A stretch of DNA of 63,258 nucleotides, counting the filler, from Octopus bimaculoides (taxonomy: Eukaryota), in assembly GCF_001194135.2 (NCBI RefSeq). It is 5 parts of 5 records of this genome, joined end to end, with 100 filler letters (N's around TTAATTAATTAA, not from the genome) between each part and the next. Parts side by side here need not be neighbours in the genome. Positions count along the whole stretch, not along the records: positions 1 to 27,560 come from NC_069007.1; 4 more parts are not named here. One strand, given 5' to 3'. Positions 12,558 to 15,309 of the stretch are shown piece by piece. Under the pieces are notes generated by a model, which did not search any database, was not told the origin of the DNA, and worked only from the letters and a program-made list of their open reading frames with translations. A program made the translations under genes and the position numbers. Numbering within the stretch: the first letter of the stretch is position 1; each line of letters begins with the position of its first letter.

Positions 12558-14239
12558 GTAAGACATCTTCCTGCTAATATTGTGATATTAGGTTATCAAC
12601 CTCTGCAGGTTAATGACCTCTTCATATTAATGAGCTTCCAAGGCCAATGGTCTTTAGAAAATGATGGCCTCCCAAGAGTGATGACCTTTTGACTTTCTCC
12701 AGACAACAACTTTTCATTTTATTTGTGGGTTTCTTCTCAACAGATTGAACTGAACTCATGAACCAGTACCCACTCACATAAAGATATGTATATACACACA
12801 CACACAGCAGTATGCATACACACACACACACACACACACACACAGCAGTATGCATATATATTAAGTAAAGTTATAACATGTAACCAGACAGAAATTTAAA
12901 GCTAACTCCAAAGTGATTTTTTATTTTGTAACTTTGTTACTCAAAGCTAGTGGGAGACACACTTCTTGAGTTTTCATCAACTCCCTACAGTTACTGATCC
13001 TAATTACATAAATCTCCAATCACAGGCATGAAAGCTGCCATATTAATACAGACAATCCACAGCCAACTGCATAATACACATATCCATGATCATTAGTTTG
13101 TTAACCTAGATATTTCCGTTGTAGTATTTGACTTCAAGGAGACCAAAGGACTTCCACATAAAAACCAGTTTCTAAAACTCTCCTTCAACACTTGAGTTAA
13201 TGGTCATTTGTATTTTATCTAGCAGAAATGCTTGCTAGACATTATGTTGGCAGGATCTAGACCACAACAATCAGCCTAAACTATTCCTGCTTCAGCTTTG
13301 TTATACTTAATTGTTTGTAAGTCTGCCTCAACCCCCTACTTGAACTTAACCCCTTCTGCTTCTCCCTGTACACCTACTGCCAAAATTTTCCTTCTTTTGT
13401 TTAATCCTTCAGCATCTAATCCAGCCAAAATATTCTGTTCAAAACAGCCATGTCAGGCCTCTCACAACTACCCTACAATGTCAATCTAAAAACAATCACG
13501 TCATGTTAATCTTGAGGCTATAAGATAATTAATGATTAATTCAAAACAATGTTAATAAATAAACATTACATTTGACAGAATAATCTCTCCCTAATCTTGT
13601 TTACCTTTCTCTCCCTAATCTTGTTTACCTTTCTCCCATCTTTGCGCAATTTCTATTTCTGATTCATTTTACTTCTGCCTAGATTTGCCTAACTTTTACA
13701 GACAGATTCACTCGTTTGTCTGTCTGTATTCATACAAACTTGTAAAGAGGAAAAAAAAATCACTTGGAAATTAAAGAAAACAACCTAAAGAAAAAGAAAA
13801 AAACCCACAAAAGCAAAGCAGACTAAGATTCCATTCATCTACGAATTTTGTATGACTGTCATCTCAGCAGAAAAAAAAAAATATATATATATATATAATA
13901 CATACATACACACATATATATATATAACATTGAGCTAGTTTCTCTAAAAAGTTTTCTTATTAGCTTTGTGGATTTTTTCTGTTCTCTATTTTAGCTTGCA
14001 TGACAAATATTGATTTTCATAAACTTTCTTTTCTCTACTTTAAAAGATTGACTATTTAGTCACACATACAATTTCTTTGTCTTTCTCTTTGTCTCTCTCT
14101 TTGTGAATATCCACCATGCCTACACACACTCTCTCTTTCTACACACACATCCATAACATAGATGTATATATGTAATTTTCTCATCAGTTACATCAAAATA
14201 TTCAAACTGGAATCCCAAAATAGATTTCTCACCACCGCC

Positions 14240-14596
14240 ATGGATCACAGCAACGAAATATCTTTAGCGTCGCAGATATTCAGGTCAAACAATTTCCATC
14301 ACCATGAGCGTTTACACTCACACCATTTCATTTATGGCAATAAGAAGCTGCTGTACAACATTAAAATAGCCATTGTCGTCACTCTAGGAGTCATTGTTGT
14401 GCTTGGCTGTATCATATACATTGTATTGCAGTGTCGACGGAAGACACGTGTCACATTCTTGCTTCCACGACACCGGGACTCTTTCTCAGATCAACATAAC
14501 CTGATAGACAGCGTTGAAACCACAGAGACTCTGCTCAATGGAGAGCTTGGCATCAAAGAACGGGATGATGAACAGTGCCGAGAATTCTATGTTTGA
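14240..14596 (+). CDS. Small single-pass membrane protein (118 aa), or the terminal exon of a larger type I membrane protein, ending in the class II PDZ-type ligand EFYV
   Basis: Uninterrupted non-repetitive ORF with start context accaccgccATGg. A hydrophobic segment IAIVVTLGVIVVLGCIIYIVL is followed by QCRRKTR, an acidic tail and ...QCREFYV*. Possible splice acceptor ttttctcatcag|14188; AATAAA at 14910. Confidence 0.75.
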   Translation: MDHSNEISLASQIFRSNNFHHHERLHSHHFIYGNKKLLYNIKIAIVVTLGVIVVLGCIIYIVLQCRRKTRVTFLLPRHRDSFSDQHNLIDSVETTETLLNGELGIKERDDEQCREFYV

Positions 14597-14785
14597 TGGG
14601 GGGGGGGGTTGTTTAAATTTCTTGATTTTTTTGATACTTCATTATTTTTGTTTTGTTTTTTTTTTAATATTTAGAAGCAGTAAAAAAAAAGAAACAAGAA
14701 CAAAAAAATGTTACCATTGTACAAAATATAATGATATCAGAAAAAAACAAAAACAAGGAAAGTTATCTTTTCATAATTATAACAC

Positions 14786-14902
14786 TAATAATAATAATAA
14801 TAATAATAATAATAATAATAATAATAATTATTATTATTATTATTATTATTATTATTATTATTATTATTATTATTATTATTATTATTATTATTATTATTAT
14901 TA
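14786..14902. repeat. (AAT)n directly fused to (TAT)n: self-complementary microsatellite
   Basis: About 14 AAT units followed by about 25 TAT units. Confidence 0.95.
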
Positions 14903-15309
14903 TAATACCAATAAATTGTGATAATAACCTCTACAATATCAAACCTGTATTCTACCCAACTCTATCCCTAATCCTTACAAATAGCACCTTTCAGAAATCC
15001 CTAAATTGCCCCAATGATAGAAGCTTTCATTCTGTATCAAATATGAAACCTAGTTGGTAGTAAAATATTACATGTAGGAACATATCTTTTATAATCAAAT
15101 GGATTTCATTGCAATCCCAGTCTGCAGCACCTTTGGTAAATGCTTTCTTCCATATTCCTTAGATGGACATGTGACTTGCAAGTAAAATTGCATAGATTAA
15201 AACAGAGTAGAAGCCAGTGTCTTATTAATATCAAACTTATTAGTATATATATATATATATATATATATATATATATATATATATATACACATATATGCAT
15301 ATATGCATA

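Follow-up and report, generated by a model that had tools for sequence, protein, structure and literature searches.

Small type III membrane proteins that carry a class II PDZ ligand are an already known design. SMAGP and glycophorin C are of this kind: they have about 100-130 amino acids (aa), no signal peptide, a short N-terminal ectodomain that is Ser/Thr-rich and glycosylated, one transmembrane (TM) helix and a short cytoplasmic tail with the acidic-aromatic-aromatic-aliphatic end K-E-Y-F-I. The class II PDZ ligand follows the pattern hydrophobic-x-hydrophobic-COOH, as in EYFI of glycophorin C and SMAGP, EYYV of neurexin and EFYA of syndecan (its C2 motif), and the E-[FY]-Y-[AV] end of syndecans and neurexins binds the PDZ domains of syntenin, CASK and the Mint type. 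Syndecans and neurexins belong to type I: they have a signal peptide and a large ectodomain, which bears glycosaminoglycans in the former and is composed of LNS and EGF domains in the latter. In this study we describe a gene of Octopus bimaculoides whose product appears to resemble SMAGP and glycophorin C most in function and design. It lies in a window (the whole stretch of DNA that was analysed) of 63,258 nucleotides (nt), made of five parts of the assembly GCF_001194135.2, and the gene is in the first part, a 27.5-kb piece of NC_069007.1 (positions 1 to 27,560). Judged from sequence comparison, and with somewhat better than even confidence, the open reading frame (ORF) at 14240-14596 on the plus strand is the complete single-exon coding sequence (CDS) of a stand-alone 118-aa membrane adaptor that belongs to a mollusc family and ends in a class II PDZ-type ligand. 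No concept is overturned by such a protein. Databases already list the ORF as a hypothetical protein, and the new element is that a family with a defined motif set is recognised across molluscs.

The CDS begins with the ATG at 14240 in a strong start context (accaccgccATGg), runs for 118 codons and ends with the TGA at 14594-14596, and its product reads MDHSNEISLASQIFRSNNFHHHERLHSHHFIYGNKKLLYNIKIAIVVTLGVIVVLGCIIYIVLQCRRKTRVTFLLPRHRDSFSDQHNLIDSVETTETLLNGELGIKERDDEQCREFYV. The GC content is 42.9% in the CDS versus 35.3% in the piece. The nearest relatives in the database search were the O. vulgaris protein CAI9741912.1, described as a 'hypothetical predicted protein' and identical across all 118 residues, and a cluster 77-79% identical that is found on many Logan contigs. 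The comparison with O. vulgaris gave eight substitutions in the CDS, all of them at third positions and synonymous (8/8) and none non-synonymous; the flanks differ by 8-14% and contain indels, the 3' flank being 85.6% and the far 5' flank 92.4% identical. Given about 77 synonymous and about 274 non-synonymous sites, the neutral chance of eight synonymous changes out of eight is about 5e-6 by our own arithmetic. The Sepia orthologue, from a decapodiform, shares 77-79% aa identity with the octopus protein and uses the same start and stop codons; the differences at the three codon positions number 17/12/73, and the proportion of non-synonymous differences (pN) is 0.117 with synonymous sites saturated. 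The nucleotide similarity between octopus and Sepia is restricted to the CDS and ends at its borders. The ORF is a real gene under strong purifying selection, at two evolutionary depths. The conservation of frame, TM helix and C terminus, which the initial annotation had asked to have checked, is seen in both comparisons, and the EFYV-type end is kept.

These results bear directly on the idea that the ORF arose by chance or is a fragment of a repeat or a transposable element. The surroundings are indeed rich in repeats and transposable elements and the protein has no Pfam domain, but the CDS is single-copy in the 27.5-kb piece of the window as well as within the 20-kb locus of O. vulgaris, it is under purifying selection at two depths, and the family is conserved across mollusc classes; the idea is already refuted by these data and its probability is negligible. 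A match to a repeat family, which the initial annotation had named as a finding that would speak against the gene, was not seen, the CDS being single-copy and without a Pfam match above threshold. The remark that this is the only clean ORF outside transposable elements in 63 kb holds within the 27.5-kb piece, where the other ORFs of at least 90 aa are microsatellite or N-run artefacts or remnants resembling transposable elements.

The Sepia orthologue is transcribed, because contig L004, on which it lies, comes from SRR23936175, a larval RNA-seq run of Sepia esculenta (PMC10442824). The Sepia-type product is indexed in 48 blocks of the collection, and 24 contigs were examined. In another Sepia contig (L009, positions 1-26) the Illumina read-2 adapter AGTTCAGACGTGTGCTCTTCCGATCT is joined 92 nt upstream of the ATG, and possibly marks the 5' end of a fragment or transcript unless it is an assembly artefact. 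The octopus 5' flank at 14117-14239, which includes an acceptor-like site, is nearly invariant relative to O. vulgaris, with one substitution and a 3-nt indel at 14188, in contrast to the other flanks (8-14% different), and this near-invariance may reflect constraint on a 5' untranslated region (5'UTR) or a promoter.

The initial annotation had called the protein an orphan, which is wrong because about 30 relatives, 96-173 aa long, form a family with it in cephalopods, gastropods and bivalves. An exhaustive HMMER search with an Octopus and Sepia profile against 1.84 billion representatives retrieved 21 further relatives (E 1.8e-11 to 3e-4). Profile searches of a database of 5.8 billion proteins recovered this family alone, at E <=1e-16, and at <=1e-20 with nothing else up to E=5; the window protein itself matched the family profiles with E 3e-25 and 6e-28. 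The gastropod members come from Batillaria attramentaria, Nucella lapillus, Candidula unifasciata and Pomacea canaliculata, the bivalve members from Sinanodonta woodiana and Dreissena polymorpha, and one more member from an Argopecten irradians sample (run SRR23580857, PMC10989825). The named members are 'hypothetical' or 'uncharacterized' mollusc proteins without exception. When the window protein and 21 members were scanned with Pfam, all matches were below threshold and driven by the TM helix, such as RIFIN, Orf78, GAPT, EphA2_TM and HemY_N, and a profile search of PDB sequences returned TM noise only (best E=0.024, a helix of a G-protein-coupled receptor). The literature on EFYV, EFFV, KEFFV, KEFYV and REFYV held nothing relevant. 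The window protein has G50, C57, Y60, Q64, C65 and EFYV, which completes the family signature.

Several deposited or called models of members were found to be faulty. The O. vulgaris model (L013 10001-10438, CAI9741912.1, 145 aa) begins at an upstream ATG without support from the family alignment, and the Pomacea canaliculata model (P0028) begins within the TM helix and is without the EF[FY]V end. The gene caller of the Logan/ENA contigs read TGA as Trp and produced false '...EFYVW...' extensions that mask the true C terminus, in L001-L012 and L002 (products P0002-P0007) and likewise in P0010, P0013 and P0014. A candidate tandem paralogue in Sinanodonta, called as a gene of 118 aa at L025 19384-19740, 9 kb downstream of the family member there, was discarded as poly-Glu translated from a GAA repeat.

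Family features were counted over 32 members, and the invariant columns were taken from two alignments (A3 and A4). The N-terminal segment has 26-55 residues with a mean of 13% His and up to 21.6%, and almost no N-x-S/T sites. It is followed by a pre-TM consensus, E-x-Y-H-H-x4-N-K-H-x3-E-I-K, in which K42 is nearly invariant, by a TM helix with invariant G50, C57 and Y60, and by an exit with invariant Q64 and C65 and then a basic cluster (Q-C-[RK]). The tail carries N-R-R, D-x-K-x-L and [ST]-x-[DE]-x-L-L. At the C terminus, E-[FY]-[FY]-[VL] is present in 30/32 members. V occupies position 0 in 29 members and L in the other 3; position -1 holds F or Y in 32/32; at position -2 there are 27 F, 4 Y and one I; E stands at -3 in 30 members, and K or R at -4 in 19. 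The columns of this motif outrank almost every other column of the tail in conservation. The class II PDZ pattern, hydrophobic at 0 and -2 with a free C terminus, is present in 32/32 members, and in the window protein it is formed by F and V directly followed by the stop codon. The tail motif 'GSSDTLENLL' occurs in three tandem copies in P0020, and units like 'D-x-R-D-x-x-E-N-L-L' recur in P0016 and in P0019, a pattern suggestive of a modular linear motif that can be duplicated.

The hydropathy profile of the window protein has a single hydrophobic helix, roughly residues 43-63 (3.09 for the best Kyte-Doolittle 19-mer), and a hydrophobic N-terminal segment is absent, so there is no signal-peptide-like h-region. 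The tail has 11 D/E versus 9 K/R. The AlphaFold2 model made with the family alignment has one helix at residues 31-71, with block means of the predicted local distance difference test (pLDDT) of 93 for residues 41-50 and 97 for residues 51-60. The pre-TM motif forms the start of this long helix, and both tails are disordered, which is the setting expected for short linear motifs. K/R residues are more frequent in the 15 residues after the TM helix than before it in 31/32 members (means 4.6 versus 1.7), and the net charge is +4.4 after the helix versus +0.25 before it. This charge bias, combined with the absence of a signal peptide, predicts a type III (N-out/C-in) topology. If the topology were inverted, the N terminus would be cytoplasmic and the C terminus extracellular or lumenal, EFYV would be no cytoplasmic ligand, and the His-rich part would be intracellular. 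The absence of a signal peptide and of N-glycosylation sites in the N terminus, together with three lysines before the TM helix of the window protein, fits such an arrangement, but the positive-inside rule favours C-in in 31/32 members, with the charges given above, and the invariant juxtamembrane Cys lies beside a basic cluster, which is typical of the cytoplasmic face. We therefore regard an inverted topology as very unlikely.

As an alternative, the initial annotation had suggested that the ORF is the final exon of a bigger adhesion protein, reached through the acceptor-like site that ends at 14187. There is indeed a pyrimidine tract with cag at this site (14176-14187), the frame is open back to 14162, and similar sites lie at comparable distances upstream of the ATG in Sepia (49 nt) and Batillaria (38 nt). 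The upstream in-frame stops, however, refute the idea. Such a stop precedes the Met by 18 nt in the Sepia contigs (RNA-seq shown for L004) and in the genomic decapodiform contig L002, by 15 nt in L014, by 21 nt in the contigs of the scallop sample and by 15-21 nt in the P0035 group; the distance is 72 nt in the P0047 group, 81-84 nt in the two octopuses and 60 nt in Batillaria. All 32 members (32/32) begin with Met at the equivalent place, and the annotated CDSs of O. vulgaris, Batillaria and Sinanodonta are single uninterrupted exons. From -76 onward and through the 3'UTR, the Sepia transcript and genomic contig L002 are collinear, and the Sepia RNA-seq contigs read straight through the acceptor-like site. 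Conservation begins exactly at the ATG of 14240, where the similarity to Sepia also starts, and an acceptor at 14187 would enter the frame out of phase with any conserved coding sequence. The in-frame peptide encoded by 14162-14239 has no counterpart in Sepia or other family members and differs by a 3-nt indel between the two octopuses, and its upstream ATG has a weak context versus the strong context at 14240; this segment is probably 5'UTR or intron and not coding. At most, the site at 14187 may end a 5'UTR intron. The last-exon reading is extremely improbable, and the other proposal of the initial annotation, a small single-pass membrane protein that stands alone and lacks a signal peptide, is supported. 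The acceptor-like site and the AATAAA at 14910-14915 explain the envelope of 14188-14915 that had been assigned to the ORF.

Kinship with neurexin, syndecan, glycophorin C or SMAGP, to which the initial annotation had likened the protein, was not borne out by sequence homology. The window family shares with SMAGP and glycophorin C the small size, the architecture without a signal peptide and the type of C-terminal end (K/R-E-F-Y/F-V instead of K-E-Y-F-I), but hhalign gave probabilities of 0.5% and 3.3%, respectively, with the last residues alone aligned and with approximate human reference sequences. The ectodomain of the window family is His-rich and without N-x-S/T, in contrast to the Ser/Thr-rich, glycosylated one of SMAGP and glycophorin C, and the family has its own pre-TM motif and the Q-C-[RK] exit. 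With syndecans and neurexins the likeness is the C-terminal E-[FY]-Y-[AV]; the window protein has neither a signal peptide nor a large ectodomain, and the syndecan C1 motif RMKKKDEGSY is not in it. Membership in the syndecans was rejected, as there is no Pfam Syndecan match at E up to 10, no N-terminal hydrophobic signal, and an hhalign probability of 2.4% versus syndecan-2 that covers the TM exit only (approximate reference sequence). Membership in the neurexins was rejected because of the stand-alone 118-aa CDS, the upstream in-frame stops and the start Met shared by the members. MAP17/PDZK1IP1, FXYD, KCNE and GAPT/SCIMP are likewise small single-pass proteins in which a conserved TM helix packs on a partner; MAP17 also has a PDZ ligand, and GAPT and SCIMP have a juxtamembrane Cys. 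GAPT and SCIMP gave only sub-threshold, TM-driven Pfam matches (GAPT 14 bits versus a cutoff of 21.1; SCIMP E=0.018 in one member). FXYD (P-F-x-Y-D, ATP1G1_PLM_MAT8) was rejected, since 'FIYG' stands at the wrong spacing from the TM glycines and there is no Pfam match.

The features listed in the initial annotation, namely the strong start context, the His cluster, the lack of a signal peptide, the single TM helix, CRRK, the acidic tail and EFYV, are all present in the sequence, and the predicted N-out/C-in topology, for which it had also called, comes from the charge bias in 31/32 members. The EFYV-type end and the His-rich N terminus, which it had seen in one protein, prove to be family-wide (30/32 members; mean 13% His) and selected, so that reading the end as a class II PDZ ligand is reasonable. 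On this reading, the protein would insert as type III, N-out/C-in. The pre-TM helix and the invariant polar or small residues of the TM helix would pack against a partner membrane protein or against the protein itself, a packing suggested by the polar or small character of these residues. C65, a candidate palmitoylation site, may be lipid-modified. A cytoplasmic scaffold of a type such as syntenin, CASK, MPP, afadin or GRASP would receive the terminal E-F-Y-V in its PDZ domain, and by this means the small adaptor would tether or sort itself, along with its partner, at a membrane domain. The dileucine-like motif may have a part in endocytic or sorting control, and for the His cluster metal-ion binding or pH sensing is conceivable.

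On the main rival reading, which keeps the gene and the topology, E-[FY]-[FY]-V would be mainly a trafficking signal, that is, a C-terminal valine or di-aromatic signal for leaving the endoplasmic reticulum (ER) through COPII Sec24 or GRASP55/65, and not a ligand of junctional or synaptic scaffolds; what the protein really does would then depend on the TM helix and the His-rich ectodomain, for example as a small auxiliary subunit of a channel or transporter or as a metal-binding protein. A paper on proTGF-alpha and COPII (PMC4907727) is reported to bear on such signals. The strongest conservation, in the TM and pre-TM helix (G50, C57, Y60, Q64, C65), fits an intramembrane partner, and the His-rich N terminus recurs across the family. 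A C-terminal valine is the ER-export signal of Cx36, CD8, Kitl and HLA-F, and the PDZ domains of GRASP55/65 bind such cargo (PMC11470877). The ER-export and GRASP cargo proteins, which include Cx36 (SAYV), CD8, proTGF-alpha and Frizzled-4, share with the window family a free C-terminal aromatic-valine that is PDZ-like as well as export-competent (PMC11470877), but they are unrelated proteins. Valine signals usually need only the last one or two residues, whereas the window family fixes four terminal positions, with E at -3 in 30/32 and an aromatic residue at -2 in 31/32. These two fixed positions favour the PDZ-type reading over ER export, and the two roles are not exclusive, as GRASP recognition is itself a PDZ interaction. 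We consider a mainly trafficking role possible, if rather unlikely.

Several points weigh against the reading of the gene as a mollusc PDZ-ligand adaptor. The PDZ-ligand role is suggested by a pattern of four residues, and a C-terminal valine is common among proteins. The positive-inside bias of the window protein itself is moderate (5 versus 2 K/R), and the N terminus has no N-glycosylation sites, which would corroborate an extracellular location. No octopus transcript contig was found in the collection, where the exact 118-aa product is absent, the 144-aa ORF is not recorded as a called gene and the ORFs of 144 and 145 aa come without an assembled RNA contig, so the expression observed is that of relatives. 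The mollusc-only range of the family, as judged from the sequences retrieved, is provisional. The coordinates of the features are collected in Table 1.

Table 1. Features of the gene and its flanks, in window coordinates.
Feature	Position	Strand	Basis or remark
Complete CDS, 118 aa and TGA, one exon	14240..14596	+	ORF; comparison with O. vulgaris and Sepia
N-terminal segment, residues 1-41, predicted extracellular or lumenal	14240..14362	+	Contains the His cluster
His cluster HHHERLHSHH, residues 20-29	14297..14326	+	In the short N-terminal segment
Pre-TM motif, HFIYGNKKLLYNIK in the window protein	14324..14365	+	Alignments A3 and A4
TM helix, residues 43-63	14366..14428	+	Hydropathy; family-invariant G50, C57, Y60; pLDDT
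Membrane exit QCRRK, residues 64-68	14429..14443	+	Q64 and C65 invariant (A3, A4), then basic cluster
Tail motif VETTETLL, acidic dileucine-like	14513..14536	+	Alignment; family form [ST]-x-[DE]-x-L-L
C-terminal EFYV, candidate class II PDZ-binding motif and/or ER-export signal	14582..14593	+	Comparison of 32 members
Upstream in-frame extension, MYICNFLISYIKIFKLESQNRFLTTA	14162..14239	+	Coding in the O. vulgaris gene model; probably 5'UTR or intron
Acceptor-like ttttctcatcag, pyrimidine tract and cag	14176..14187	+	Possible 3' splice site of a 5'UTR intron
AATAAA, first after the stop, 314 nt downstream	14910..14915	+	Candidate poly(A) signal

The O. vulgaris gene has an AATAAA 266 nt after its stop codon, and the Sepia contigs carry more than 1.1 kb past the stop. 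In Octopus, Batillaria and Sinanodonta alike, no other called gene with a domain is found within 10 kb, and Rfam and tRNA scans of the piece gave no match to RNA genes. Elsewhere in the piece, the ORFs at 11037-11321 and 25961-26251, both on the minus strand, translate to clearly similar peptides (...LLSVSIHQFYSQGFGWPEAIVEDICPRCHAIELNLESCG and ...LLSVSIYQIHSQDFDQPKATVKDTCPRCHVVGLNLEPCG), which points to a dispersed repeat present twice in the piece; its second copy has a further match at L013 6693-6902. Three short ORFs at 9071-9361 (minus), 11563-11928 (plus) and 12088-12378 (minus), with peptides such as GRPRKTWDEVV... and ...IPVIIGALG... and no Pfam match, look like C-terminal remnants of retroelement ORFs. 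Tandem repeat arrays of about 35 nt (CCACAAAATTTGTGACATTGTGAC...) are present at 18335-18755 with 4-6.6 copies and 70-79% match, and are also found in O. vulgaris. The N runs at about 2850-3290, 7036-7770, 20349-20480 and 21090-21735 (1818 N in total) are flanked by (TA)n or (AT)n microsatellites, and all four represent gaps in the assembly at simple repeats.

Annotation of mollusc genomes often overlooks small single-exon membrane proteins or gives them wrong models, as the O. vulgaris and Pomacea examples illustrate, and here one 'hypothetical protein' has become a defined family in at least three mollusc classes with three testable short motifs (His cluster, dileucine-like motif, PDZ-type end). 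Should the C terminus bind PDZ scaffolds, the family would have evolved independently as a functional analogue of SMAGP and glycophorin C, and it would provide a handle on the organisation of membrane domains in the tissues of cephalopods and other molluscs. It is also conceivable, as a quite improbable extension of what the sequences suggest, that the protein is a mollusc-specific (or lophotrochozoan) adaptor whose His-rich ectodomain binds Zn, Cu or Ni or senses pH and relays this through the TM helix and a partner channel or transporter to a PDZ scaffold at E-F-[YF]-V. If true, such an adaptor would be a lineage-specific link from extracellular metal or pH to junctional or synaptic scaffolding.

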